Position numbers and translations under genes: made by a program
Origin: Macrostomum hystrix
Taxonomy: Eukaryota > Animalia > Platyhelminthes
Direction: 5' to 3'
Assembly: GCA_950097015.1 (NCBI GenBank)
Contig: CATNEN010000011.1
Location: 6,324,001-6,388,000, forward strand
DNA: 64,000 nt
In this document: in pieces, positions 3,001-25,782 of the stretch
Layout of the letters: each line of letters begins with the position of its first letter
How positions within the stretch are numbered: position 1 is the first letter of the stretch
Notes under the pieces: model-generated
The model's input: the letters and a program-made list of their open reading frames with translations, nothing else
The model's database searches: none
What the model was told of the DNA's origin: nothing

Positions 3001-6000
3001 TGCTCGTCTTCTTCGACAGCAAGCGGCAAACCGAGCTTCTGGTGGACGCCTGCCCGGATGGCCTGGGCGCCATCCTCACGCAGAGGCAGCCGGACGGCAG
3101 CAGCAGACCCGTGGCTTCACCAGCAGAGCCCTTTCACCAGTGGAACAGCGATGCGCGCAGATAGAGCTCTGGTCATAAAATTCGGGCGCCTGAAGTTTGA
3201 GCACTACCTTTGAGCACTAGCCGGAGACTATGCTTCACTGTAGTATCATACCACCACCTTAGACTGCAACACCCAGTTAAACGGATTGGCACAGTCTAAC
3301 AAGGTGGAGCTGATGTGGATCCCTGGGCATGCCGGGTTCACAGGGAATGAGATGGCGGACCAGCTTGCAAAGGCTGGCGCAGCCAGCTCCCTGATGGGCC
3401 CGGGCCCGGAGGCCCCGATCCCCGTTTCTGTGGTCAACTCCAACATCAACCGCTGGATGGAGACCCAACACCGGAGGAGGTGGTCTAGCACCCTGAACTG
3501 TCGCCAGTCCAGGGCTGCGGTGCCAACCCCCTCTAGTAACCTGCGTAAAGCCTTGCTTAGGCTAAATCGCAGAGACCTGAGAGCAGTCACCATGGCCCTC
3601 TCGGGACATGGCTGCTTCACCAGACACCGGTACCTCCAAGGCCACGTGCCTGAGGAAACGTGTCCTTTCTGCTGCTCCGGCCGTGAAAACGCCGAGCATT
3701 TCATCTGCCACTGCCCGGCCTTCACCCGGCTAAAACATCTCGGGCCGGCACCGACCCGAGTCGAAGCCTGCTCGCCCGAGAGCATTCCACAGCTCGCCCA
3801 CTTTCTTCGGGATACCGGCCGAGCTGATTTCTTCCCAGCCTATGGCGAGGGGGATCGCGCGGCGGAACCGACCGACGGACCACGCTGAGCGGCACCGCTT
3901 CGCTGGAGGCCGTCCGGCTGCCAGGGGTTAGCGATATGGGCGGCACCGACCGCCTCCTCGCTGCGTCCGTCATGGAGGCTCCCTGCCGCTAAGTCAAGTC
4001 AAAGTAGTATCATACCACCGACAACTTGTGCCGCTGTTCAAGCCTGAATCTCGACCACCGCCACGAATGCACCGACAGCGGCGTCCAGGTGAATAACTTG
4101 ACACCGCCTTCGTCGACGCCGTGGATCGCCGAAGCTGTGCCAAAGGGTTTCAGCCTCGCTCAAGTGCGGGAAGCGTCATGCACCGACAGCGGCGTCCAGG
4201 CGGTAACTGGAATGTGCACGACCCGGCCTAACGCTCCTACAAGACCGTCAGCAACGAGCTCTCAGAGAGCGACGACGTTCTGCTAAGGGGCGACCTCATC
4301 GTCGTTTCGGAGACATTGCGCAGGCATGTCTTCCAACTAGCGCACACCGGCCATCTAGGCCCCTGACCGAACCCTGAAGCGGCTGCAAACGAAAGTTCTG
4401 GTGGCCTCGCGACTGCGAGACCTTTGTGAAGTGCTGTACGCTCTGCCAGGCCGCCTCCACTGGAGCGTGTCAAACCTTAAACCGACACAGATCCCAGACG
4501 GCGCCTGGCTCACTCTAGGCATGGACTTCTACGGACCAGTCCAGGGACAGATGCTGCTAGTCATCACAGAGCTCTACTAAAAATATCCAGAAGTCTGCTT
4601 CTTGAACTCGTCGACAGCGGAGAGCGTGAGCCCGCACCTTCGCCCGCTGTTCGGTAGATTCGGCGTCCCCATCGAGGTGGTCACTGACAACGGCCCACCA
4701 TTCGATTCAGCCGCGTTCCGCAGCTTCCTCACCGCCAATGGCATTCGACATCGCCTTATCTGCCCGCTCCACCCTGAATCCAACGGAGCGCCAGAGCGAG
4801 TCAACCGGAGCATTGGAAAAGTCATCCAGACGGCTGTGGCCGAAGAGCGTAACTGGAAGGAGGCCATCGAGGATTGGCTGCTGGCTTTCTGCACAACACC
4901 GCTGAGCTCCTCCTCATGAGCAGGACGCTCAACGAGGGCATGCCGACCACTAAGCCGACTCAGCCAGTCGATGTGAATCATGAAGAAGTTCAAGACTGGC
5001 ACCGGAACTACGTGCAAGGTATAAAAGCAAGATTCGATGACTACAGGGCTGCCCAGGAGCATGGCATCATTGACGGCAGCAAAGTTCTACGAAAGAAGCA
5101 ACCGCGCAACAAGCTGCCTTTTGAGCCGTCTCCGTGGACCGTCAAGCTGGTCCAATGAGACACATGCGTCCTTCAGCGGGGCGAACAATCCAACAACACG
5201 CTTTTCTCTTTTATCCTCTCTAGTTGGGAAGAAATGTACGTAGGCGCCCAGTTGTTCAGTCGTCTTAGCTGTAGGCCCTGAGCTTCGAGCGATAAATGTA
5301 CATCTGCGCCTATCACGTGCACGTTGCATGTTCATCACCAAATATCAAATATAATCGATTGTTCAGACCCTTCGAGCAGGGCTTTTTCGATTGCTAGGCT
5401 TTTTCTTCCATAACAATTCATCGGTCTCTCGGTCACTCCTTACAATGACGAACCCTAAAACAAGAGAGTGCACGTTAATCCGACTCGCCTTTCGATATTT
5501 GAATTTATTGTCAGAGAAGCTAGTCGTATGTTTGACAAAAGAGCGAAATTTAGAATTAACGGTACGTGCTACAAAAAAAACTATATCGAGTCACCTGTTA
5601 CGAGATAGAAGATCGGCTAACCTATTAGAAAAAAGAAGTCACTTGTTAGACAAAATACGAGTCACCTGTTAGACAGAATAGAAGGCACCTGTTAGACAAA
5701 ATAGAAGGCACCTGTTAGACAAAATAGAAGGCACCTGTTAGACAAAATAGAAGGCACCTGTTAGACAAAATAGAAGGCACCTGTTAGACAAAATAGAAGG
5801 CACCTGTTAGACAAAATAGAAGGCACCTGTTAGACAAAATAGAAGGCACCTGTTAGACAAAATAGAAGGCACCTGTTAGAATAGAAGGCACCTGTTAGAA
5901 TAGAAGGCACCTGTTAGACAGAATAGAAGGCACCTGTTAGACAAAATAGAAGGCACCTGTTAGACAAAATAGAAGGCACCTGTTAGACAGAATAGAAGTC

Positions 6001-9000
6001 ACTTGTTAGACATAATACAAGTCACCTGTTAGACAAAATAGAAGTCACCTGTTAGACAGAATAGAAGTCACCTGTTAGACAGAATAGAAGGCACCTGTTA
6101 GACAAAATAGAAGTCACCTGTTAGACAGAATAGAAGGCACCTGTTAGACAAAAAAGAAGGCACCTGTTAGAATAGAAGACATCTGTTAGACAGAATAGCA
6201 GTGACTTGTTAGACATAATACAAATCACCTGTTAGACAGGTGACAATCTAATCTAGACAAATCTATTCTCATAGAATGAGCATAGAATCTGAGCATACAA
6301 TCTGAGCCATCATCGACAACTCCGCGAATACGCATCCGTTTGCAAAGCGACACATCACTATCGATAGAGCTTCCAACCGAGGTTAATCAGCTAAAATTTT
6401 AAGTAAAAACATTGTCAATTTGCTTTGTTTTCCTTTAAAAAGCGTCTGATTGCCTGCATTGAAATATTACAGTGTTTTAGGCTCTCTACGAAAAAATATT
6501 TGTCTGTTAAAAAGTCACTGAATTTCGAATTACGCAGCCAGTTATTGAAATACCAAACATTTTTTTTGTTTCAATTGTAAGAATAATCCAACACTCCATT
6601 TTGTGTAGTAATTAATTTTTCCTTTCTGTGCATTTTTCTTGAAGCATTGGTCAGAACTTCTTTAGAAACACCTTGATAAAAAAATTTTTAAGCATCTGTT
6701 TTTCAAGCGCGCGTAGAGAGCCTTCATTGTACGCCTTGTTTTGTACACTGATATCATTTCTCTCTCCCGTTCCTATCCTTTGGTGTACAATCAATTGGGG
6801 CTCTCTAGGAAACCAGTTTTTTCTATCGCTAGCCAGTAACTATAGCTCTAATAAAATATCTTAACAATGTTCTTGTACGTCTATTTGTAAAATCTCTGAC
6901 CCAATGAGCTTGACAGTTACTGACGACTCCACCCCCACCGCGCTGAGCGAGAGCATGGCGACAAGGCAACACAGTGGAGAGCCTCATTTAGTCGAGAGAA
7001 AGCACAAATGGATAGCAGTCCAAGTTACAGAGGACGAGTGCGCTAAAGTGGATGGCCAGCCGTTTATCTACTGCCGTGATTACCTCGATTCAAATCACAC
7101 TGTACTATTTGACAAACTATTGCAAACCACTCCATGGGAGTCGCGACGATGCGTTATAAGAGGAATAGAGCACAATGAACCTCGCAGGACATTTGCTTAT
7201 GGAAAGCCATACTCCTACTGTGGAGTAGAATGGAAAGAGAACAACAACTGGCCTGAGGAGCTGCTCCAGATTAAACAGTGCTTGTCAAAAGAATTTAATG
7301 TTGACTTCAACAGTGTCCTCCTAAATCTATATCGAGATGGACAAGACTCAATCCAGCTGCATCAGGATAATGAGAAGTGTCTCGGCATCAACCCAGTCAT
7401 TGCCAGCCTGTCTCTTGGAGCTGAGAGATGCCTGACTGTTGAGAACACGGACGAAAAACGGCATTACTCATTAATAATGTCACCAGGCAGCATGCTGGTG
7501 ATGCAAGGGGACTGTCAGACCAAGTTCAAACATGGAGTCCTAAAGACGAGGGAAAGCGCACCACGCATCAACGTGACATTTCGCCACATTGTGCCTGAAT
7601 TAAACGATGTACCAAGCCGCAACGAGCCGACGCCCTCAGAAACGAGTATGGACATTGCAGTAAAGACGCCTGAGCAGATAATCGATGAAAGGAAAAAATC
7701 TGAATCGACTGATGCAGCTGACGCCCACTTTGACATCTCATTCCTCAGTCAGCCTCTTCAAGAAGCCAAGACGCGACTCGGGAAGCGGAAGCAAAAGCTG
7801 GCTGACAAAGAATCAGCTGCGTCCGCCGAAGAGACGACCGTGTTAGAAGATGCGAGCTTTAAGGTCCCGAAGACTAAAAAGTTCCGAAAAAGGAGATCAC
7901 CCATGAAGGGAGCTGACAAAAGCGATAAAGCCGTACAGACAGAGTTGATTCCAGTAGATGCAGCAACTAACACAGAGAACAACCTACTGATGGATACAGA
8001 CTGGAAACGTTTGAAATCTCTCGAGGAAGGAGTCGCAGCGGTTCTCAGTGAAGTAAAACAACTGAAAAGTAGCTTGTCAATTGATGAGTACATTCAAAAG
8101 ACTCGCAATGCGCTTCAATCCTTGACCACCGGTCTAATGCATCAATTAGAGGCAAAAGCCAAAGAAAGTCAAACGGAACTACTGAAAGCGCTAAACATCA
8201 CAAAATCCGACGTTGTGAACCATCTAAAGCAAACAAGTAGCTCAACTAAGGATGCTATCATTAGCGAAGAAAGAGCAGTGAAGGCAGAAGTAATAAAAAG
8301 CCAACAAATCAGCCACAGCCTCGAGCAGAAGGTCGGTGAACTGGTCAGTCTGCAAGCGCTGGCGTTCACTAAGACGCAGAACGAAAGAGCAGGACGGGAA
8401 ACATATGCTGAGAAGGCCTCGCGCTCAGTGAACCCAACAGCATCTTCAAAAAATGTAACGATGGCAGTCAGTGTCAGTAAAAATGCAGAGAACGCATCAG
8501 GAGCTGTAGCAAGGGACTCGGAACCAGCTGAGGCAGAAAGCAACAGTTGTACCAAACAGAAAGTTAAAGAAGGCCTGAAAAAGCATGATATAGTCGTTGT
8601 CAGCTCAAAGCTAGGGAAAGCCCTTGACTATCGCAGACTCTTCCCGAATAGTACAATTCGAGTTGTCTACTACAACACTCAAGAAAGGCTCATTGAATTA
8701 CTGCAAGAGCCAAACTTCAGTGCGCAAGAATGTCTGGTAATTGACCTAAACCATGAGCCATCAATGGAGGTGGCATATAAAGCTGTCACTGCAATTGACG
8801 CTGGGCAAAGGCAACACGGTGCGAATTGCCTGCACCTACTCATCATCCCAGACAGTTCGACACGAACAGAACAACTCTTCGAGAAAGAACTGTGTGAGTA
8901 TGGTGTTAAACATCAGCTTTTAACATTTAACTTTCATGAAATCCACTTCTACGACGGTGAACTCAACAGCAGCGGAGCGGACTTTTTGTTTGCGTTAATG

Positions 9001-12000
9001 TGCAAATGCATTCGAAATCTAAACCTGAAAGTACGGCCGCATCCGGCTAACACAGAGAACCAGCGCCAGCAAACAGTGCATCACCGGCATCAACACAGCT
9101 ACAGAGAGTCACGAGGCGGCGGTGCAACTGGCTACAGGAACTATCGAGCGCATAGCAGCTACCCAGTTCGAGATGCCAATTACATCCGTAGCGAAATAGA
9201 CCACCGCATCAGCACCAACGGCTATTTTGACAGAAGTCGTGCTAGCCGCTATCGAATCAGCAACGAGTACGACTACAACAAAAGAGACCGCAAAAACTTT
9301 ATAAGTGGCTATCGCGCCAATATCGAGCCCAGCAACTACCGCAGAAGTAGCTTTGGATACCGCAACAGATACCAACAAGTTGGTGTCAGGCGCCTCGACG
9401 ACCGCCAGTTTCGTTGCGTCGACTAGGACCGCCTGTCCAAGCCTGTCCGGCAACAACTTCAATCGCCGGGGGGGTGGAGGAGTCATTTAGCTGCTCAACT
9501 CGGGTCCTCTAACTCCTTTGCCTAATAACTTTCTATTTTTGATACCGTCAATTCCCATACCGCGCAACAGGTTTTGAAGGTTTTGAACCCGTCGTGACTG
9601 ACTCTAAGGACTACTACTCCCTCTTTCTACGAGTATGTTAACTTCTACGCTAAATTTTAACTCCCGAATAGTCACTGAAACACAGGGCAGCTGCGAAAAG
9701 AAGGTTACTTATAATAAATCAGAGTTGATTATCACCAGTTGGAACATAGATGGACTGATGCTCAGTGGAGAATGCAAAATGGAATCACCATGTTTCCACG
9801 AACATATTAGGAATAGAGACATAGTTTTCCTCTGTGAGACCCACGCCAAACAGGAGCAGCTAGACTCAAACACGCTGATAGATTTCACCTGCTTTGGAGC
9901 AGATGGAATCAAGGCAAGGGGAATCAACAAAGGTAGATTATCAAATGGCATGGTTTTCCTCGTTAAAAATAATATTGCAAAGAGAACCACATTAGTGCAC
10001 AAATCTGACTTCGCTCTGGTACTAAAAATAAAGCAAAAGCAGTCTGAAGAACCCCTGTATATCTTAGGGTGTTATATCCCACCGGAAAATTCTAAATACT
10101 ACAAAGAAGATATATGGGAGGAGATTAAATATCTCATCCAGCTCTTCTCAAGAGAGGGCTCCGTATTAACAGTAGGTGACTTCAATGCACGAACTGGCAC
10201 ATTACAGCCCAGCACTAGGGATAAGTTTCCCAGACAGAATCAGGACTCTGAGAAAAACAAGCATGGATTAAGACTGATGGAAATGTGCTCCGAGACCAAG
10301 AGCACGATTCTGAACGGAATGACTCAGGGTGACATTATGGGAAATTACACGTTTAGTAGCACACTAGGCCGAAGTACCATAGACTACGCTATTGTATCCA
10401 TGGATAAAGTGGATATTATAAAAGACTTCTTTATTCATCCTCAAAGCTTTCTGTCCAGACATTGCCCGCTAACAGTCACTCTGATTTTTCCTGATCATGT
10501 CCAACCCGAACACGCAAACCAGGAAAAACATGAATCCTTCCCAATGCCTCCAAGATGGGACACTGAAACGCAGGGAAGTTACATTGAGGCATTGAATAAC
10601 AAACAAAGCGAAGAAATAATTAGAAAGTTGCAATCTATCGACGCACACGATGGAAAATCCCTGGAAAATTTGTTCTCGAGCTTGACCAACCTGCTTAGAG
10701 ACTCAGTGGCAGAAAGCTGCGCAAAGACAATCATTCCGAACAAGTTCTGGACAAATCGAGACGAGACACTAAGAAACTTGAGCAAATCATTAAAGTACGT
10801 GGCCAGGAAAAAAAGACGTAGACCAACTGACAGCGCGCTGGCATCAGAATATAATGGGCTAGCGAAAAAATACAAACAACAGCTCAAGAAACTTAAGCAG
10901 ATGGACATAAATGACTGCATTCAGAAAATGGCGGCTAACGGAACCTCAAAGGGATTCTGGTCCGGTCTTAGAAAAGCAGAAGAGTTGCTGTTCCCCAGCA
11001 GGAGACTTAACAGACCTCAAGCCCCAATCGCTGACATCGCGGACAACCTAACCAAAGTGTTTAACGCACATCCTTCTTTGGGAACCCAGCCGCATCGCAC
11101 AGATGAAGCAGTTAGTCCCGAAGATTTAATTAGCTGCGTAGATCTCGATAGAGCAGTTAAAAAGCTAAAGAGAAGAAAGGCTGCAGGAATAGATGGTATA
11201 ACAAATGAGCACATTATCTACGGACAAGAGAAGCTAAAACCCGTACTTCTGAAGCTTTTTAACGCAAGCGTAAGACTCGGCCAGACTCCTGCACAGTGGT
11301 CAAATGCCCTAATCACACCGATTTATAAAAAGGGTTCCCGTAGTGACCCCAAAAACTACAGACCCATAAGCGTGCTGCCTGCCCTGGCTCGCCTGTTTGC
11401 CTCACTTATCTATGAAAAGCTAGAAACTCATATTCGCACCCTCGACTTGCTTTCAGCCAGTCAAATAGGAAATAGAAAGGGTTACCGAACTTCAGACCAC
11501 ATTGCCACTCTCTTGACGTTGATCCACAACAAAAAGCGTCGCAAAAGGCCATTTCACTTAGTGTTCTTTGACTTAAAAAGCGCATTTGACATGGTCCACC
11601 ATCCAACACTTTTCCAACGACTTAGGGAGTTAAAGGTCAGCCCAGAAATAATCGAAGCAATACAAAGCATGTACTCAGGAGCTAAATTCCAACTGAAGAT
11701 CTCAGATGGCCAAGCAACTAAGGCAAGGAGCATAACAAATGGAGTAAGACAAGGCTGTCCCCTATCCCCTCTACTCTTCTCACTCTATATAGATCCTTTG
11801 AGCACAATGCTAAGGGATTCATTTCGCAGCGACACCTTCATTAAAGATGAACAAATCAACAACTTGCTATACTGCGATGATTTAGTGATCTTTGGAGAGA
11901 ATCCTCGAGAGTTGCAGAAGGGCCTCGATAAAGTGTCAGAATTTTGTCAGAGCCACAAGCTAGAAATCAATATGCAAAAAACTAAGGTTATTAGCTGTTG

Positions 12001-13848
12001 CCCTGACCCATCAAAGACGGCTAACAAACTATTTCTGCAGGGACAACTGTTAGATAGCGTCAAAGAATGGAAATATCTTGGCTTTCACATCAATGCTAAA
12101 GGAACCGTGGATTCCCATGCCACAGAGATTAACAAAAAATGTGGATATCCTATTCTTCTCTTAAGGAAATTAGCCAGCCATGGGGCGGTCAGATACAACC
12201 AGCTCATGCTGTACTGCACAGCAATGATAGAAAGCATAGCTCTGTACGCCTCTGAGGCCTGGGGGGCTTTTGTCTCGTGGAACCTGGGTCCTTGGGACCG
12301 CTGTCTTTTTGAAAGAGTAAACATCAGGTGCTGTAAAGCCATACTACAAGTCAGCCAAAATACGGATGGCAACGGGGCCCGCTCGGAGTTAGGCAGATTG
12401 CCTTTATTATACAACATCCAGAAAAGAAGCATTTCGTACTGGGCCTCCATAACAAGCCGGCCGGACTCCATAATTTCCAAGTTATTGGCGGACCAAACAT
12501 ACAGTGATGTTGGAATCAAAGCAAAGACCAACAATGACGTTATGCTGAACTGCAGAGGCATTAGTCCTGCAAAAGCAATTGGAAACCACAGGAAAAATTT
12601 CGTTTCTCAGTTCGATACCCATTGGAGACAAAGGACACAGAACTCAAGCAAGCTAAGTCACTTCTATTACTCCTTCAAGCAATATTATTCAGCCGAAAAA
12701 TATTTACAACAAATATACAACCCGGAGTGGAGACGTACCATAGCCTCGTTTAGACTAGGAAACCATAAGCTAGCTTGCGAAACATTGCGAACTGCGAGAC
12801 CGAAAATTCCGTATGTTAATAGATTATGTAGTAAGTGCAAAACAGAAGTTGAAAACGAGGTCCACTTCCTTTTTAAGTGCACTTGGAATAAATATAGCGC
12901 AGCACGTTCGAAATTTGAGACGGAAGTTTCTGGGAAAACCCCCAATTTCATATCCTTAACAGCAGAAGAAAAATCTAACTACATAATGGCTCAAGACGAT
13001 AGGGAAACCGCTGAAGCTTTAGCAAAATACATCATAGAAATATCTAAAATAAGGGAACAGCTGCCCTGAGACTACGAGATCTTACTAGCATTCAACAATA
13101 GATATTTCATATTTTGTTTTATCCCTGCCGTCCCTTGTGTTTTTACTGCTCTTATTTTTAATACCTTTGCTTTCCCTTCCCAGCTCGATATTTGATTCCT
13201 ACTAAACTTCGCTTTTTATGTTGCTTTTCGCTGTTCATTTAAATGTGTTGTTAAAAAAAATATAAAAAAAAAAATCAGCACCCATAGATGGCGTGCGCGT
13301 TTTAATAATAATAATAATAAAAAGACAAAATAGAAGTCACCTGTTAGATAGAATAGAAGGCACCTGTTAGACAAAATAGAAGTCACCTGTTAGATAGAAT
13401 AGAAGGCACCTGTTAGACAGAATAGAAGGCACCTGTTAGACAAAATAGAAGGCACCTGTTAGACAAAATAGAAGGCACCTGTTAGACAAAATAGAAGTCA
13501 CTTGTTAGACAAACTCTGCCTGTCCGCAGCCTGCAACAGTGAACTAGTTGACAGTCTGGTTGAACGTGACGACCTTCACATGGAGCAGGACTCGCTGCTG
13601 ATCGAGGTGGAAGACTTGACTCGGTGAGTCCGTATGTACATATTTTTCATTTACTACTCATTGACGATGAGTAAGCAGTATAAGTAGTGTGGTACAATGC
13701 AATTAACTGTAGTCGCGCGACTTAAAGAATTTACATCGCTAAAAAACCTTCCAGGCGAGCGAAGGAGGCAGCCGGACGGTTGAAAGCCAAGGAGTCCACA
13801 GCAGCAGCAGCAGCAGCAGCAGCAGCCACAAAAATTCGAATGCTGTAG
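83..13848 (+). CDS. SCHIP1: SCHIP1-like (schwannomin-interacting protein 1) gene, 3' part; coding exons 83-130, 205-318, 1007-1181, 13530-13623, 13755-13848
   Basis: All five segments have AG/GT ends and compatible phases (0,0,1,2). The spliced product includes [26 protein letters not shown] and [40 protein letters not shown]. These match the SCHIP1 C-terminal domain pattern (LQAEAKMALAMAKPMAKMQ ... [31 protein letters not shown]). Stop TAG at 13846-13848, with AATAAA just downstream. The 5' exons lie outside the window. Confidence 0.8.
335..985. repeat. Intronic minisatellite, two related ~35-bp units in alternation
   Basis: Tandem TAGAGGGAGACGAAAGCTCGAATGTACATTTCGGC-type and GAATAGGAATGGTAGAAAGCTTAAATGTACATTTC-type units fill SCHIP1 intron 319-1006. 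Confidence 0.9.
1527..5340 (+). mobile_element. Decayed Ty3/Gypsy LTR retrotransposon (gag, protease, RT, RNase H, integrase remnants)
   Basis: Frameshifted fragments occur in Gypsy order. Gag: [27 protein letters not shown] (~1610). Zinc knuckle: CYRCGEKGH (~2115). Protease: [11 protein letters not shown] (~2345). RT: [20 protein letters not shown] and WAHDDMVI (~2440-2610), plus LNRDKCRF. RNase H: [17 protein letters not shown]. Integrase: [36 protein letters not shown]. Purine tract GGGAAGAAA then TG at ~5226-5236. Many stops and frameshifts. Confidence 0.9.
3256..4003 (+). mobile_element. 5'-truncated non-LTR retrotransposon (RNase H + C-terminal CCHC), inserted into the Gypsy RNase H domain
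   Basis: ORF 3286-3888 has the RNase H C-half [23 protein letters not shown] and the zinc knuckle [19 protein letters not shown]. It is followed by a short 3' UTR and an AAGTCAAGTCAAA tail. An exact 16-bp direct repeat GTAGTATCATACCACC flanks it at 3240-3255 and 4004-4019. The exact clade within the RNase H-bearing I-group LINEs is not resolved. Confidence 0.88.
5660..6238. repeat. 23-bp minisatellite (TTAGACAAAATAGAAGGCACCTG)n, left part
   Basis: About 25 tandem units are directly visible; the array stops at the 5' end of the LINE. Confidence 0.95.
6904..9426 (+). CDS. LINE ORF1: AlkB-family 2OG-Fe(II) dioxygenase + coiled-coil region + degenerate SGNH/esterase-like domain + R/Y/S-rich tail
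   Basis: The ATG-initiated frame is uninterrupted. ALKBH2/3-like motifs are [37 protein letters not shown] (HxD at 7360-7368), [23 protein letters not shown] (His 7531) and PRINVTFR (Arg 7564 and 7582). Confidence 0.88.
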   Translation: MSLTVTDDSTPTALSESMATRQHSGEPHLVERKHKWIAVQVTEDECAKVDGQPFIYCRDYLDSNHTVLFDKLLQTTPWESRRCVIRGIEHNEPRRTFAYGKPYSYCGVEWKENNNWPEELLQIKQCLSKEFNVDFNSVLLNLYRDGQDSIQLHQDNEKCLGINPVIASLSLGAERCLTVENTDEKRHYSLIMSPGSMLVMQGDCQTKFKHGVLKTRESAPRINVTFRHIVPELNDVPSRNEPTPSETSMDIAVKTPEQIIDERKKSESTDAADAHFDISFLSQPLQEAKTRLGKRKQKLADKESAASAEETTVLEDASFKVPKTKKFRKRRSPMKGADKSDKAVQTELIPVDAATNTENNLLMDTDWKRLKSLEEGVAAVLSEVKQLKSSLSIDEYIQKTRNALQSLTTGLMHQLEAKAKESQTELLKALNITKSDVVNHLKQTSSSTKDAIISEERAVKAEVIKSQQISHSLEQKVGELVSLQALAFTKTQNERAGRETYAEKASRSVNPTASSKNVTMAVSVSKNAENASGAVARDSEPAEAESNSCTKQKVKEGLKKHDIVVVSSKLGKALDYRRLFPNSTIRVVYYNTQERLIELLQEPNFSAQECLVIDLNHEPSMEVAYKAVTAIDAGQRQHGANCLHLLIIPDSSTRTEQLFEKELCEYGVKHQLLTFNFHEIHFYDGELNSSGADFLFALMCKCIRNLNLKVRPHPANTENQRQQTVHHRHQHSYRESRGGGATGYRNYRAHSSYPVRDANYIRSEIDHRISTNGYFDRSRASRYRISNEYDYNKRDRKNFISGYRANIEPSNYRRSSFGYRNRYQQVGVRRLDDRQFRCVD
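9635..13069 (+). CDS. LINE ORF2: apurinic-type endonuclease + reverse transcriptase + C-terminal Cys/His domain
   Basis: The ATG-initiated frame is uninterrupted. APE motifs: SWNIDGL, LCETH, GCYIP, GDFNART, STIDY, SRH. RT motifs: [51 protein letters not shown]. Confidence 0.95.
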   Translation: MLTSTLNFNSRIVTETQGSCEKKVTYNKSELIITSWNIDGLMLSGECKMESPCFHEHIRNRDIVFLCETHAKQEQLDSNTLIDFTCFGADGIKARGINKGRLSNGMVFLVKNNIAKRTTLVHKSDFALVLKIKQKQSEEPLYILGCYIPPENSKYYKEDIWEEIKYLIQLFSREGSVLTVGDFNARTGTLQPSTRDKFPRQNQDSEKNKHGLRLMEMCSETKSTILNGMTQGDIMGNYTFSSTLGRSTIDYAIVSMDKVDIIKDFFIHPQSFLSRHCPLTVTLIFPDHVQPEHANQEKHESFPMPPRWDTETQGSYIEALNNKQSEEIIRKLQSIDAHDGKSLENLFSSLTNLLRDSVAESCAKTIIPNKFWTNRDETLRNLSKSLKYVARKKRRRPTDSALASEYNGLAKKYKQQLKKLKQMDINDCIQKMAANGTSKGFWSGLRKAEELLFPSRRLNRPQAPIADIADNLTKVFNAHPSLGTQPHRTDEAVSPEDLISCVDLDRAVKKLKRRKAAGIDGITNEHIIYGQEKLKPVLLKLFNASVRLGQTPAQWSNALITPIYKKGSRSDPKNYRPISVLPALARLFASLIYEKLETHIRTLDLLSASQIGNRKGYRTSDHIATLLTLIHNKKRRKRPFHLVFFDLKSAFDMVHHPTLFQRLRELKVSPEIIEAIQSMYSGAKFQLKISDGQATKARSITNGVRQGCPLSPLLFSLYIDPLSTMLRDSFRSDTFIKDEQINNLLYCDDLVIFGENPRELQKGLDKVSEFCQSHKLEINMQKTKVISCCPDPSKTANKLFLQGQLLDSVKEWKYLGFHINAKGTVDSHATEINKKCGYPILLLRKLASHGAVRYNQLMLYCTAMIESIALYASEAWGAFVSWNLGPWDRCLFERVNIRCCKAILQVSQNTDGNGARSELGRLPLLYNIQKRSISYWASITSRPDSIISKLLADQTYSDVGIKAKTNNDVMLNCRGISPAKAIGNHRKNFVSQFDTHWRQRTQNSSKLSHFYYSFKQYYSAEKYLQQIYNPEWRRTIASFRLGNHKLACETLRTARPKIPYVNRLCSKCKTEVENEVHFLFKCTWNKYSAARSKFETEVSGKTPNFISLTAEEKSNYIMAQDDRETAEALAKYIIEISKIREQLP
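13323..13512. repeat. 23-bp minisatellite, right part (continuation of the 5660-6238 array)
   Basis: The same CACCTGTTAGACAAAATAGAAGG units resume right after the LINE tail and end just before the SCHIP1 acceptor at 13529. Confidence 0.93.
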
Positions 13849-16850: not shown

Positions 16851-19800
16851 CTAATTCACCATTTTCGACTGTCTGGGCGGTGGCACAGGTGCCGCAGGTA
16901 TGTTGTTAGTCTGTGGCTGAACTGCCTGCTGCTGCGGCTGCTGCTGTTGCTGAGTGTCCTTACCAGAAGGCAGGTTAGTATAGTCGTGTCCATTAGCTGT
17001 TGCTGGCGGCTGCTGCTGCTGCTGCTGCTGCTGCTGCACATAAGCGTACACAGCCCTGTAAACAAACTTGTACTGTCCCTCAGTCTGCACCATGCCAGAC
17101 CGCTGAGAGCGCACGTGATGAGTCAGCTTCTGAATGTCTATGTCGCAGTTGAGTCCGTGGACATCAATGTAGTTCAGCAGCATGTCGATAATGATGACTG
17201 ATCCTGTACGGCCAATGCCGGCACTGCAGTGTACCACAATGGATCCGGGTTGGCTCGAATCGCCAGCCCTGGACTGTTCCATAGTTTTGGCCTTGTCTCG
17301 CACATCGCAGAGCATTTTAATTACTGATCTAGGATCCTGGGGCACATTGTGATCCGGCCAGCTCAGGTATTGAAAGTGCAGCACTATTCTCACCTCGTTG
17401 CCAGGCAACCTGATCACCTCAAGCCGGTTAATCTTGTAATCGCCCAGGTCGGTTTCGTCCAGATGGCGAATAACAATAGCTCCCTGCGGAGCTGAGAACT
17501 CCATGGTCTTGTGGTCCGTTGGCCAGTACCTGGCACACTTCACCTTCGACCGCTCCTCCTCCTTGGTGGTCATGACAATGATGCGAGAGTTCTCCTGCCA
17601 GACCATCCGCCAGAAATCAGAGATTGTGTTCGGCATCGGGCCCTGGTGGCGTTGGGTAGTGAGAGTCCAGTGAGTCTCATAGTGAGAGTCCAGTGTAATA
17701 AATCTAGTATGAGATCTGATAAATCCAGTATGAGATCTGATAAATCTAGTATGAGATCTGATAAATCCAGTATGAGATCTGATAAATCTAGTATGAGATC
17801 TGATAAATCCAGTATGAGATCTGATAAATCTAGAATGAGATCTATTCAATCTAGAATGAGATCTGATAAATCTAGCATGAGATCTGAGGAATCTAGCATG
17901 AGATCTGATGAATCTAGCATGAGTTCTGATGAATCTAGAGTGAGATCTGATGAATCTAGTATGAGATCTATTCAATCTAGAATGAGATCTGATAAATCTA
18001 GCATGAGATCTGAGGAATCTAGCATGAGATCTGATGAATCTAGCATGAGTTCTGATGAATCTAGAGTGAGATCTGATGAATCTAGCATGAGATCTGATGG
18101 GTGCAACGATACCAAAATTCCCAACCGCTCACCTGAGTAGCAATGTATTCTCTGCAGCCAGAATAACTAGACTCAGGTGTGATGTAATTAGCGTTGATGT
18201 ACTCTCCGAATTCGCCAGCGTCCTGTTGACCGACATCGTTGAGCTGGACTCTGGTGTGATCAAAGGGCAGGATGTTCTTGAATCGATTCTTGGTCTTGTT
18301 CTCAGGCTTGCTGCCCTCTTTTCTCTCGTTGCCGACTCCCTGGGCGGTCTCGCGCTGCAGCTCTTCGAACTCCTCCCAGAAGTTGCTGTTATTTTGCTCC
18401 AGTTCCTGGGGATATGGGTTGGGGTTGGGGATAAGAGAGGGTTTGTAGGGCAGGATAAGAGGGTTTGTAGGGGCGGATAAGAGGGTTTGTAGGGGAGGAT
18501 AAAATAGGGTTTGTAGGGGAAGGTAAGAGAGTTTGTAGGGGAGGATAAGAGGGTTTGTAGGGCAGGATAAGATGGTTTGTAGGGGCGGATAAGAGGGTTT
18601 GTAGGGGAGGATAAAATAGGGTTTGTAGGGGAAGGTAAGAGAGTTTGTAGGGGAGGATAAGAGGGTTTGTAGGGGAGGATAAGAGGGTTTGTAGGGGAGG
18701 ATAAGAGAGTTTGTAGGGGAGGATAAGAGGGTTTGTAGGGGAGGATAAGAGAGTTTGTAGGGGAGGATAAGAGAGTTTGTAGGGGAGGATAAAATAGGGT
18801 TTGTAGGGGAAGGTAAGAGAGTTTGTAGGGGAGGATAAGAGGGTTTGTAGGGGAGGATAAGAGAGTTTGTAGGGGAGGATAAGAGGGTTTGTAGGGGAGG
18901 ATAAGAGAGTTTGTAGGGGAGGATAAGAGAGTTTGTAGGGGAGGATAAGAGGGTTTGTAGGGGAGGATAAGAGAGTTTGTAGGGGAGGATAAGAGAGTTT
19001 GTAGGGGAGGATAAAATAGGGTTTGTAGGGGAAGGTAAGAGAGTTTGTAGGGGAGGATAAGAGGGTTTGTAGGGGAGGATAAGAGGGTTTGTAGGGGAGG
19101 ATAAGAGAGTTTGTAGGGGAGGATAAGAGGGTTTGTAGGGGAGGATAAGAGAGTTTGTAGGGGAGGATAAGAGGGTTTGTAGGGGAGGATAAGAGGGTTT
19201 GTAGGGGAGGATAAGAGGGTTTGTAGGGGAAGGTAAGAGAGTTTGTAGGGGAGGATAAGAGGGTTTGTAGGGGAGGATAAGAGGGTTTGTAGGGGAGGAT
19301 AAGAGGGTTCGTAGGGGAGGATAAGAGAGTTTGTAGGGGAGGATAAGAGAGTTTGTAGGGGAGGATAAGAGAGTTTGTAGGGGAGGATAAGAGGGTTTGT
19401 AGGGGAAGGTAAGAGAGTTTGTAGGGGAGGATAAGAGGGTTTGTAGGGGAGGATAAGAGAGTTTGTAGGGTAGGATAAGAGGGTTCGTAGGGTAGGATAA
19501 GAGAGTTTGTAGGGCAGGATAAGAGGGTTTGTAGGGGCGGATAAGAGGGTTTGTAAGGGAGGATAAAATAGGGTTTGTAGGGGAGGATAAGAGGGTTTGT
19601 AGGGGAAGGTAAGAGAGTTTGTAGGGGAGGATAAGAGGGTTTGTAGGGGAGGATAAGAGAGTTTGTAGGGGAGGATAAGAGGGTTTGTAGGGGAGGATAA
19701 AATAGGGTTTGTAGGGGAGGATAAGAGGGTTTGTAGGGGAAGGTAAGAGGGTTTGTAGGGGAGGATAAGAGGGTTTGTAGGGGAGGATAAAATAGGGTTT

Positions 19801-22800
19801 GTAGGGGAAGGTAAGAGAGTTTGTAGGGGAGGAAAAGAGGGTTTGTAGGGGACGATAAGAGAGTTTGTAGGGGAGGATAAGAGAGTTTGTAGGGGAGGAT
19901 AAGAGGGTTTGTAGGGGAGGATAAGAGAGTTTGTAGGGGAGGATAAAATAGGGTTTGTAGGGGAAGGTAAGAGAGTTTGTAGGGGAGGATAAGAGGGTTT
20001 GTAGGGGAGGATAAAATAGGGTTTGTAGGGGAAGGTAAGAGAGTTTGTAGGGGAAGGTAAGAGAGTTTGTAGGGGAAGATAAGAGGGTTTGTAGGGGAGG
20101 ATAAGAGGGTTTGTAGGGGAGGATAAGAGAGTTTGTAGGGGAGGATAAGAGGGTTTGTAGGGGAGGATAAGAGAGTTTGTAGGGGAGGATAAGAGAGTTT
20201 GTAGGGGAGGATAAGAGGGTTTGTAGGGGAGGATAAGAGAGTTTGTAGGGGAGGATAAAATAGGGTTTGTAGGGGAAGGTAAGAGAGTTTGTAGGGGAGG
20301 ATAAGAGGGTTTGTAGGGGAGGATAAAATAGGGTTTGTAGGGGAGGATAAGAGGGTTTGTAGGGGAGGATAAGAGGGTTTGTAGGGGAAGGTAAGAGAGT
20401 TTGTAGGGGAAGGTAAGAGAGTTTGTAGGGGAAGATAAGAGGGTTTGTAGGGGAGGATAAGAGGGTTTGTAGGGGAGGATAAGAGAGTTTGTAGGGGAGG
20501 ATAAGAGGGTTTGTAGGGGAGGATAAGAGAGTTTGTAGGGGAGGATAAGAGAGTTTGTAGGGGAGGATAAGAGGGTTTGTAGGGGAGGATAAGAGAGTTT
20601 GTAGGGGAGGATAAAATAGGGTTTGTAGGGGAAGGTAAGAGAGTTTGTAGGGGAGGATAAGAGGGTTTGTAGGGGAGGATAAAATAGGGTTTGTAGGGGA
20701 GGATAAGAGGGTTTGTAGGGGAGGATAAGAGGGTTCGTAGGGTAGGATAAGAGAGTTTGTAGGGCAGGATAAGAGGGTTTGTAGGGGCGGATAAGAGGGT
20801 TTGTAGGGGAGGATAAAATAGGGTTTGTAGGGGAAGGTAAGAGAGTTTGTAGGGGAGGATAAGAGGGTTTGTAGGGGAGGATAAGAGGGTTTGTAGGGGA
20901 GGATAAGAGAGTTTGTAGGGTAGGATAAGAGGGTTCGTAGGGTAGGATAAGAGAGTTTGTAGGGCAGGATAAGAGGGTTTGTAGGGGCGGATAAGAGGGT
21001 TTGTAGGGGAGGATAAAATAGGGTTTGTAGGGGAAGGTAAGAGAGTTTGTAGGGGAGGATAAGAGGGTTTGTAGGGGAGGATAAAATAGGGTTTGTAGGG
21101 GAGGATAAGAGGGTTTGTAGGGGAGGATAAGAGAGTTTGTAGGGTAGGATAAGAGGGTTCGTAGGGTAGGATAAGAGAGTTTGTAGGGCAGGATAAGAGG
21201 GTTTGTAGGGGCGGATAAGAGGGTTTGTAGGGGAGGATAAAATAGAGTTTGTAGGGCAGGATAAGAGAGTTTGTAGGGGAGGATAAGAGGGTTTGTAGGG
21301 GAGGATAAGAGGGTTTGTAGGGGAGGATAAGAGAGTTTGTAGGGTAGGATAAGAGGGTTCGTAGGGTAGGATAAAAGAGGGTTCGTAAGAGTTTGTAGGG
21401 GAGGATAAGAGGGTTTGTAGGGGAGGATAAGAGGGTTCGTAGGGTAGGATAAAAGAGGGTTCGTAAGAGTTTGTAGGGGAGGATAAGAGGGTTTGTAGGG
21501 GAGGATAAGAGGGTTCGTAGGGTAGGATAAAAGAGGGTTCGTAAGAGTTTGTAGGGGAGGATAAGAGGGTTCGTAGGGTAGGATAAAAGAGGGTTCGTAA
21601 GAGTTTGTAGGGGAGGATAAGAGGGTTCGTAGGGTAGGATAAAAGAGGGTTCGTAAGAGTTTGTAGGGGAGGATAAGAGGGTTCGTAGGGTAGGATAAAA
21701 GAGGGTTCGTAAGAGTTTGTAGGGGAGGATAAGAGAGTTTGTAGGGGAGGATAAGAGAGTTTGTAGGGGAGGATAAGAGAGTTTGTAGGGGAGGATAAGA
21801 GAGTTTGTAGGGGAGGATAAGAGAGGGTTCGTAGGGGAAGATGAGAGTGGGTTTGTAGGGGTGGATGAGAGTGGGTTTGTAGGGGCGGATGAGAGAGGGT
21901 TAGTAAGAGCGTATAACGTAGGGGTTGTAGGGGCGGATAGAACATGTTATGCAGGGGCGGTCGCAGGGGCGGATTTGGAGGGCACAGCTTTAAGAGGGCG
22001 AACTCGTACACACAAAATATAACATGGCGAAGTGTCTCACCTGAATTCTGTCGCCAATCTGGGCAGCCGTCATTCTGGTAGCATTGTATGGCTGTTTCAG
22101 ATGCACCACTGTGCCAGACTTGTCTACCATTGGTGTCCGCCTATAGAAATCTACAAGATCAGGGAGCTTTTTGAACTTCTGACCGCCGCCAACATCGTAG
22201 CCAGTCTCCGGATCGTAGTAGATGCGGATGTGCAGAACCTGGCATTAGAGATTAGAGCATTGTTGGACAGGGGCAACACGGAAGGTGCCAACCAAGCTGC
22301 AGTTCTAGCAACAAATTCAACTAAATCTGTTGCTGCGAATTTAACAACGATTCTGGCCAGCATTTTCTGCTTCGAATCTAGCTACGGATTCTGCTTCGGT
22401 TCTAGCTACGGATCCTGCTTCGGTTCTAGCTACGGATCCTGCTTCGATTCTAGCTACGGATCCTTGCTTCGATTCTAGCTACGATCCTTGCTTCGATTCT
22501 AGCTACGATCCTGCTTCGATTCTAGCCACGGATCCTGCTTCGATTCTAGCTTCGATCCTGCTTCGAATCTAGCTACGGATTCTGCTTCGGTTCTAGCCAC
22601 GGATCCTGCTTCGATTCTAGCTACGATCCTGCTTCGATTCTAGCAACGGATCCTGCTTCGATTCTAGCTACGGATCCTGCTTCGATTCTAGCGACGGATC
22701 CTGCTTCGATTCTAGCTATGGATTCTAGCTTCGATTCAAGCTACGGATCCTGCTTCGATTCTAGCCACGGATCCTGCTTCAATTCTAGCAACGAATCCTG

Positions 22801-25407: not shown

Positions 25408-25782
25408 TGTTGCTCAAAATGTCCTTACGAACTAATGCTCTGGTAGATTAGAGATAAATGTTCGCAGTTCTTCAGGTTCTTGCACTTGCTTTTTTGGCCC
25501 TTTGCCAACTGTTTCTTCGAAAAAAGTATTTTAAATTGAACCCCTCAAAACAATAAATCAAAGTAGCGATCTACTCTCATTAAATTTATCTAAGATACAC
25601 AAAATGGTTAATTTAGGTAATTCAAACAGCAAAACATAATGTTTCGTTTATTTTTTCTTTGATAATAAAATAAAAAGCTTGTTGCCAACTGTTTCTGCCA
25701 CAGTTTGAGTTTGTGATTCAAGATAATTTTTCTTTTCGCTAAGAGACACAACTTCCTAAACTCGCCTGAAGACGGCTCTGTG
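25408..25782. promoter_or_regulatory. Probable bidirectional promoter between PTPN11 (-) and the NME8/9-like gene (+)
   Basis: The two ATGs diverge 375 bp apart. The 15-mer TTGCCAACTGTTTCT is present twice (25502-25516, 25682-25696). Transcription starts cannot be seen in the sequence. Confidence 0.55.

Follow-up and report, generated by a model that had tools for sequence, protein, structure and literature searches.

The locus described here raises the question of what an AlkB-family demethylase domain would do at the front of a retrotransposon protein. The locus lies within 64,000 nucleotides of the flatworm Macrostomum hystrix (assembly GCA_950097015.1, contig CATNEN010000011.1, positions 6,324,001 to 6,388,000), the whole of which is referred to as the window. 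It is occupied by a full-length long interspersed nuclear element (LINE), a non-long-terminal-repeat (non-LTR) retrotransposon with two open reading frames (ORF1 and ORF2). The proteins encoded by LINE ORF1s are usually seen as RNA chaperones or coats with RRM, zinc-knuckle, PHD or esterase modules. In this element, the ORF1 protein (ORF1p) starts with an AlkB domain. The first-pass annotation of the same DNA had described this domain as ALKBH2/ALKBH3-type, placed it at about ORF1 residues 35-230 and suggested that it repairs or erases methyl marks on the RNA of the element or on its nascent cDNA.

As judged from the sequence, the domain is confirmed as a complete AlkB of the ALKBH2/3 subgroup in which every Fe(II) and 2-oxoglutarate ligand is present. 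The Pfam family PF13532 (2OG-FeII_Oxy_2) matches ORF1 residues 68-227 with E 3.7e-25 and a score of 89.7 bits, the cut-off being 31.2. When the first 249 residues are searched against the PDB, human ALKBH3 is the best match (E 3e-26), ALKBH2 comes next (E 2e-14) and ALKBH7 is marginal. In an alignment of 47 AlkB sequences, the window's and 46 others, the invariant columns include R94, N141, Y143, H153, E157, H210, R221, T225 and R227, while D155 is near-invariant; all of these residues are kept here. R94 lies within the lid motif PRRTFAYG, and the metal ligands H153, D155 and H210 correspond to ALKBH3 H191, D193 and H257. An AlphaFold2 model of the AlkB part, built on the same alignment, has a predicted local distance difference test (pLDDT) score above 90 across residues 50-230; the mean is 81.8, lowered by disorder in the first 45 residues. 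Foldseek matches this model to human ALKBH3 (E 1e-19, template-modelling score 0.83, root-mean-square deviation 1.4-1.7 A) and to ALKBH2 (E 3e-16). ALKBH6, NMAD-1, ALKBH8, Escherichia coli AlkB and FTO score far lower, ALKBH5 is not among the 50 matches listed, and the Atlas shape search agrees. The predicted fold is a double-stranded beta-helix with a nucleotide-recognition lid, nearest to ALKBH3 and ALKBH2.

The element that carries the domain is a classic LINE of the APE type. Its ORF2 encodes an apurinic/apyrimidinic-type endonuclease (APE) followed by a reverse transcriptase (RT), and its copies share a 3' end, vary in their 5' truncation and have target-site duplications (TSDs) of variable length together with a simple-repeat tail. 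A DNA search of the whole assembly (220 Mb) gave at least 44 matches, with 389 first-look candidates. Five copies are full-length (L001-L005, L001 being the window copy), 99.3-100% identical and intact in both ORFs (840 and 1144 aa). The remaining copies, at least 40 in number, are 5'-truncated. Over all matches, the 5' starts range widely between query positions 1 and about 5950, whereas the 3' end falls nearly always at query position 7081 and (TAA)n terminates every copy. TSDs of about 4-17 bp flank L002, L004, L009 and L015 (about 17 bp in L004, 6 bp in L009 and 5 bp in L015). L001 and L002 differ at about three positions in 7 kb. The family is found in sequencing runs from two studies under two organism labels and, in a deep DNA run, the contig depth along the element climbs about 20-fold from the 5' to the 3' end. 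The family is very young and probably active.

The full-length copies form two subfamilies, L001/L002 and L003-L005. In ORF1 the fixed differences between them are seven synonymous and two non-synonymous (ratio of non-synonymous to synonymous differences per site, pN/pS, 0.08; binomial p 5e-4); in ORF2 they are eight of each (pN/pS 0.27; binomial p 0.01). Taken over its whole length, ORF1 evolves under purifying selection. Several statements of the first-pass annotation can be settled at this point. The positions that it gave for the HxD motif, the distal histidine, RINVTFR, LLNLY and PRRTFAYG are exact (Table 1), and in each of the five full-length copies the reading frame runs on unbroken from the AlkB domain into the remainder of ORF1. 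Hence full-length copies lacking the domain, which it had named as a finding that would speak against its reading, did not turn up among these five, and diverged lineages keep the fusion as well (see below). Its suggestion that selection be measured over the copies gave a result for the whole of ORF1, but the AlkB part alone, with a single substitution, has no power.

Protein searches of the genome reveal sister lineages with an AlkB domain (42-75% identity) and, colinearly after it, the ORF1 body of the window element (34-62% identity). Three of the matches span the junction between the two parts, one of them in a single open frame (Table 1). By these matches, the fusion of AlkB and ORF1 body is retained in diverged sister lineages, and this divergence is stronger evidence of domain retention than the substitution counts within the family.

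The arrangement extends beyond this lineage. The genome contains 68 Pfam AlkB matches, of which about 65 exceed the curated cut-off; most of the 68 lie in long frames without introns (780-930 aa). Several AlkB frames, 781-892 aa in length, are placed on the same strand, 3-4 kb upstream of open RT frames of 949-976 aa (Table 1), and at least three further families besides the window's have this arrangement. The AlkB domains of these other families are 36-41% identical to the window's, exceed the Pfam cut-off and mostly reach the last position of the profile. In the genome protein search, the same families show no similarity to the window's ORF1 body. Given this level of AlkB identity and the lack of a shared body, several LINE families of this genome that are deeply diverged from one another have AlkB in their ORF1. 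The host also has an ALKBH gene of its own with four exons (C10:1690965-1694533, minus strand), 56-80% identical to the Macrostomum lignano ALKBH protein P0274. Since this gene is only 43% identical to the AlkB of the element, the latter is not a recent capture of it.

Some AlkB frames of the genome, of about 922 aa, stand head-to-tail at a spacing of 6.3-6.5 kb (C29:3903040-3934631, C12:3679080-3692590 and C1:13535679-13542420), and RT frames of 970 aa form a separate head-to-tail array (C38:33133164, 33139326 and 33145488), the spacing over both kinds of array being 6.2-6.5 kb. Such an arrangement would be consistent with site-specific LINEs inserted into tandemly repeated genes.

Looking for AlkB-type ORF1s linked to APE and RT, as the first-pass annotation had proposed, thus brought up further LINE families in the same genome; it also brought up one foreign sequence. 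This sequence, L034, is a 6.2-kb public contig (Logan SRR10906881) holding a LINE with AlkB in its ORF1. The 746-aa ORF1 of L034 combines AlkB (residues 28-213) with an OTU cysteine protease and three CCCH zinc fingers and is directly followed by an ORF2 of 1109 aa with APE and RT. The catalytic residues of its AlkB are conserved, and its RT is only 24% identical to that of the window element. In the AlkB tree, the L034 domain falls inside a supported animal ALKBH3-like clade, and the window's AlkB has no supported placement. Approximately unbiased (AU) tests reject neither a clade of window and L034 (p 0.55) nor a placement of the window's AlkB in the animal ALKBH3-like clade (p 0.39), so that a common origin of the two AlkBs is neither supported nor rejected.

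An exhaustive phmmer search with ORF1 against 1.84 billion representatives gave 6418 matches. The best 150 of the 6418 cover the AlkB part only, at 34-47% identity, and are mostly proteins of about 180-320 aa. No relative of the ORF1 body occurs among these best 150 of 6418 or in the word-indexed searches. The word-index search with the whole ORF1 produced two matches, neither of them an ORF1 relative (P0001 is a 792-aa AlkB protein without adjoining APE or RT), and the same search with ORF1 residues 30-240 produced nothing. Three long phmmer matches were considered as LINE ORF1s and rejected: P0258 and P0274 are multi-exon animal genes without adjoining APE or RT, and P0207 sits among bacterial genes without APE or RT. 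The ORF1 of L034 is also among the long matches. Scanning metagenomes with the two transposable-element AlkBs, aligned to each other, returned 80 loci, all stand-alone AlkBs of about 200-300 aa, with RT or APE nearby in none of them. A further long phmmer match, P0246 of Holothuria leucospilota (1150 aa, annotated as ALKBH3-like), joins a DEDDy 3'-5' exonuclease (386-580) to a C-terminal AlkB (950-1137).

The ESM Atlas offers further leads. A feature search with the whole ORF1 returned clusters of eukaryotic proteins of 575-703 aa with AlkB as the sole Pfam domain and 111-163 members, in which Ctenophora is the commonest recorded phylum; it is possible that these are AlkB-ORF1 LINE proteins of other phyla. 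A further cluster, of 565 aa, unites AlkB and GDSL lipase domains and is a lead only.

The nearest relatives of ORF2 are 24-29% identical and lie on marine metagenome contigs, two of which (L032 and L033) have an ORF1 with a GDSL esterase. The closest of them, P0004 (27% identity), is carried by L039. The absence of RNase H, the C-terminal CCHC-like motif, the microsatellite tail and the GDSL ORF1s of these relatives are indirect hints at an affinity of the element to CR1/L2/Jockey.

With regard to function, three pieces of background bear on the AlkB domain. LINE ORF1 proteins bind the RNA that encodes them (cis-preference). At N1-methyladenine (m1A) and N3-methylcytosine (m3C), base pairing is blocked and reverse transcriptases stall; tRNA sequencing makes use of AlkB treatment for this reason. 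ALKBH3 and plant-virus AlkBs remove m1A and m3C oxidatively from single-stranded RNA and DNA. On these three grounds, the reading that we judge most likely, with a probability of roughly one half, is that AlkB would serve as a template-repair module borne by the ribonucleoprotein (RNP), clearing methyl groups of the m1A/m3C type. Once translated, ORF1p would coat its own template RNA, so that an oxidative demethylase of the 2-oxoglutarate/Fe(II) type would come to lie on the template. The enzyme would remove m1A- and m3C-type groups from the single-stranded RNA, from the nascent single-stranded cDNA or from both, and a larger fraction of the insertions would then be full-length and free of errors. 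Such a module suggests that methyl lesions or marks on the RNA or cDNA of the element limit copying.

A number of points weigh against template repair. The model presupposes m1A or m3C on LINE RNA at levels that matter, and the function is read from sequence and predicted structure. The substrate preference is not secure, since residues of the substrate lid partly differ from ALKBH3 (for example, WHSDD in ALKBH3 and LHQDN here). None of the sequencing runs that hold the element is recorded as RNA; their contigs show presence and 5' truncation. The fixed differences within the AlkB part alone amount to one synonymous and no non-synonymous change (binomial p 0.21). Finally, two decayed copies that are 70-79% identical to the ORF1 body (C7:13378134-13379961 and C39:13369593-13371339) start at ORF1 residues of about 237-250, and no AlkB match is found upstream of them. 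These copies are either an AlkB-less variant, which may have existed, or coincident 5' truncations. The last two points agree with AlkB being a neutral passenger, namely a captured fragment of a host or foreign AlkB without a role in the life cycle of the element, as the young family gives no power over the domain itself and the two old copies begin right after it. Nevertheless, a passenger would hardly be expected given that sister lineages with only 42-60% amino-acid identity keep the fusion and remain open in frame over the junction, that AlkB recurs in other LINE families above the Pfam cut-off, that every invariant AlkB residue is kept in the window copy and that the whole of ORF1 has so low a pN/pS; we regard this reading as very improbable.

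The enzyme may instead act on regulation rather than on damage, removing a methyl mark placed by the host (m6A, that is N6-methyladenine, m1A or similar) so that the RNA escapes reader-mediated decay or stress-granule sequestration. A demethylase fused to an RNA-coating protein fits this equally, and precedents exist in plants: in an orchid (Phalaenopsis), the Ty3/Gypsy element Gypsy_Pa_2799 encodes an AlkB with m6A RNA demethylase activity in vitro (PMC9289625), and the host enzyme AtALKBH9B promotes mobilisation of the Onsen retrotransposon through demethylation of Onsen RNA (PMC10686560). On the other hand, m6A favours L1 in mammals and ALKBH5 suppresses it (PMC7873242), hence erasure is not generally pro-LINE. 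The domain is also ALKBH3/ALKBH2-like, with the m6A eraser FTO far lower and ALKBH5 missing from the 50 matches listed, ALKBH9/ALKBH5-type enzymes not having been compared directly; erasure of a mark is accordingly held to be unlikely. Catalysis might even be dispensable, the AlkB fold acting mainly as a single-stranded nucleic-acid-binding module in place of an RRM or zinc knuckle. ALKBH3-type enzymes bind single-stranded DNA and RNA, and ORF1 has no detectable RRM, CCHC or other RNA-binding domain. However, binding alone does not require the metal and 2-oxoglutarate ligands that are invariant over the 47 AlkBs and kept here, the basic Arg/Tyr tail of ORF1p can supply binding, and L034 has CCCH fingers besides its AlkB, which leaves this idea with little probability. 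Similarly poor are the chances that the enzyme acts on host molecules, either on target-site or genomic DNA carrying off-target 3-methylcytosine (3mC) made by DNA methyltransferases (DNMTs) or, by ALKBH3-like demethylation, on tRNAs. DNMTs do create 3mC, ALKB2 co-evolves with DNMT1/3, and M. lignano, to which the host is related, retains DNMT1, DNMT3 and ALKB2 (PMC9246332). This relationship is read from the four-exon ALKBH gene. The same gene speaks against an action on host molecules in that the host retains an ALKBH of its own, and the fusion to ORF1 argues for action within the RNP.

An AlkB borne by a mobile element has two known precedents, the plant RNA viruses and the orchid Ty3/Gypsy element. 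Plant RNA viruses (Flexiviridae and others) carry AlkB in their replicase, where it is thought to clean methyl lesions off the viral RNA. In these viruses, which are likened to the LINE by description alone, the domain is part of a replicase polyprotein and there is no reverse transcription. Gypsy_Pa_2799 resembles the LINE as a retrotransposon with its own AlkB-family demethylase, proposed to act on the RNA of the element (PMC9289625). It is, however, a plant LTR element with an ALKBH5-like AlkB at the C-terminus of a separate extra ORF, whereas here the element is an animal LINE and the AlkB is ALKBH3/2-like and fused into ORF1p. As the element class (LINE) and the AlkB subgroup (ALKBH3/2-like and not ALKBH5-like) differ, the LINE AlkB is an analogue of the orchid Gypsy and plant-virus AlkB lineages and not a member of them. 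Human ALKBH3 and ALKBH2 share with it the Pfam family, the fold, HxD...H, N-x-Y, R-x5-R and the PR lid motif; the identity to ALKBH3 is about 38% in the PDB alignment and 30-33% in the structural alignment, which uses the predicted model. Unlike these free-standing cellular enzymes, the AlkB of the element is the N-terminal module of an 840-aa LINE ORF1 protein. L034 comes nearer in having AlkB at the ORF1 N-terminus of an APE-type LINE, and differs in the rest of its ORF1 (OTU and three CCCH fingers) and in its distant RT.

Accessory enzymatic domains in LINE ORF1s have a parallel in CR1/L2 LINEs, for which the available text of Metcalfe and Casane (2014, PMC4120745) describes esterase-type (SGNH) and PHD-type ORF1s; in the same available text of this survey of 448 Jockey-superfamily ORF1s, a text search finds no occurrence of "AlkB". 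In the literature, as covered by full-text searches, no non-LTR retrotransposon with an AlkB was found described. The element takes the theme of mobile elements with their own AlkB, known from plant RNA viruses and from a single LTR element of plants, into the non-LTR elements of animals, with an AlkB of the repair type in place of the m6A-eraser type.

The retention of AlkB in ORF1 across diverged LINE families would mean that methyl lesions or marks on the template RNA or nascent cDNA are a real fitness cost to retrotransposition. A broader and rather doubtful extension is that AlkB is one filling of a general slot for de-modification enzymes at the front of ORF1 across invertebrate LINEs, others being NADAR (a DNA de-ADP-ribosylase) in L039, OTU in L034 and esterase. 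AlkB would hold this slot in the genome studied here and in L034, and possibly in the ctenophore-rich Atlas clusters and the cluster uniting AlkB and GDSL. If so, retrotransposition would widely face an unrecognised barrier or host defence in the form of chemically modified template RNA or cDNA, which LINEs have repeatedly evolved enzymes to undo. In L039, an ORF at the contig edge (L039:14-928), upstream of APE-RT (L039:1448-5074), starts with the C-terminal part of a NADAR domain, a match that at E 1.7e-8 narrowly passes the cut-off. Enzymes of the NADAR family remove ADP-ribose, and the presence of one there would be another case of a nucleic-acid de-modification enzyme in a LINE ORF1. On the practical side, dozens of AlkB frames borne by transposable elements, as in the 68 Pfam matches of this genome, can inflate the counts of "AlkB genes" in annotations.

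Four parts are fused in the ORF1p of the element. Downstream of AlkB comes an acidic/basic linker with a heptad-like stretch that is a possible coiled coil; an alpha/beta domain follows, and the protein ends in a basic tail rich in Arg and Tyr. Of the coiled-coil body of ORF1 type that had been described at first, what stands is the heptad-like segment, weakly indicated by a crude count; neither an RRM, a CCHC nor another RNA-binding domain was detected in ORF1 by Pfam or a motif scan. The composition of the basic tail makes it a likely disordered nucleic-acid-binding region. The alpha/beta domain was modelled from the single sequence (pLDDT 52.6), and this low-confidence model has generic alpha/beta matches, none of them significant, in the PDB (Foldseek) and the Atlas shape search. 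Pfam gives no hit to an SGNH/GDSL esterase in ORF1 even at E 10, and hhalign of the domain with two esterase ORF1s is weak (E 0.021, probability 2%). The ORF1 segment VVVSSKLGK aligns weakly with block I (VIGDSNIGK) of an esterase ORF1, and an Atlas feature match links the domain to SGNH LINE-ORF1-like clusters at 0.85. The domain may be a degenerate SGNH-esterase-like module rather than a classical RRM/CTD body.

The insertion split a 23-bp satellite array found by Tandem Repeats Finder (TRF). As the array stops at 6238 and restarts at 13323, the insertion is taken as 6240-13322 on the plus strand. The duplicated target reported around the element is present and short (AGACAG and AGACAA). The TSD of the window copy reads AGACAR, 5-6 bp, its exact length being ambiguous because the site is inside a tandem array. 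At the 5' ends of the full-length copies, which start at query position 1, 38 or 61, the number of ATCTGAGCC units differs. An Rfam scan of the window gave no match, and the window copy is not inside a small nuclear RNA or spliced-leader gene.

Table 1. Coordinates of the element, its parts and related loci (window positions unless a contig is named; UTR, untranslated region; 2OG, 2-oxoglutarate)
Feature	Position	Strand	Remarks
23-bp satellite array, upstream half	5620..6238	no strand	TRF period 23, 27.5 copies; insertion target
Probable TSD, left copy AGACAG	6234..6239	+	sequence and array phase
5' UTR	6240..6903	+	about 37-60 extra/variable bases and imperfect ATCTGAGCC repeats at 5' end
ORF1, 840 aa	6904..9426	+	intact in five of five full-length copies
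AlkB domain, ORF1 residues about 35-230	7006..7593	+	ALKBH3-like 2OG/Fe(II) dioxygenase
N141/Y143	7324-7332	+	N-x-Y strand, in LLNLY
HxD Fe(II) ligands H153, D155	7360..7368	+	H153 = 7360-7362, D155 = 7366-7368
Third Fe(II) ligand H210	7531..7533	+
RINVTFR, 2OG-binding arginines R221 and R227	7564..7584	+	invariant alignment columns
Heptad-like segment, ORF1 residues about 360-400	7981..8103	+	possible coiled coil; crude a/d hydrophobic count, weak
C-terminal alpha/beta globular domain, ORF1 residues about 559-706	8578..9021	+	alternating beta/alpha, low-confidence model
Arg/Tyr/Asn-rich basic ORF1 tail, residues 721-840	9064..9423	+	composition
ORF2, 1144 aa	9635..13069	+	APE endonuclease, reverse transcriptase, C-terminal Cys/His motif
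ORF2 APE endonuclease, residues 35-255	9737-10399	+	Pfam Exo_endo_phos E 4.7e-7
ORF2 reverse transcriptase, residues 565-819	11327-12091	+	Pfam RVT_1 E 9e-43
ORF2 C-terminal C-x2-C-x7-H-x4-C motif	about 12827-12880	+	read from translation
3' UTR	13070..13302	+	common to all copies
(TAA)6 microsatellite tail and AA	13303..13322	+	(TAA)6 = 13303-13320
Probable TSD, right copy AGACAA	13323..13328	+	satellite restarts here
23-bp satellite array, downstream half	13323..13513		TRF
Match spanning AlkB-body junction	C41:3608388-3609143		45% identity, one open frame
Match spanning AlkB-body junction	C2:8737919-8738536		42% identity
Match spanning AlkB-body junction	C38:12806727-12807335		60% identity
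AlkB frame to RT frame	C1:22499576 to 22503391
AlkB frame to RT frame	C1:17587339 to 17591157
AlkB frame to RT frame	C17:43320 to 39440
AlkB frame to RT frame	C42:48791 to 44911
AlkB frame to RT frame	C1:17308481 to 17304594
L034 ORF1, 746 aa	L034:362-2602		AlkB (residues 28-213), OTU cysteine protease, three CCCH zinc fingers
L034 ORF2, 1109 aa	L034:2683-6012		APE and RT, directly after ORF1

Two other features of the window were observed. A 22-bp satellite at 18436-21939 (157 copies, GC skew 0.78-0.92) gives rise to a spurious open frame of 1309 aa on the minus strand. This frame abuts a real protein-tyrosine-phosphatase gene at 16851-17975, the first 50 profile positions of which are found just upstream of 18082. 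At 25780-28422 on the plus strand, an open frame of 880 aa without intron contains, in this order, one thioredoxin and three nucleoside-diphosphate-kinase domains and looks like an axonemal protein of the TXNDC3/NME8 type.

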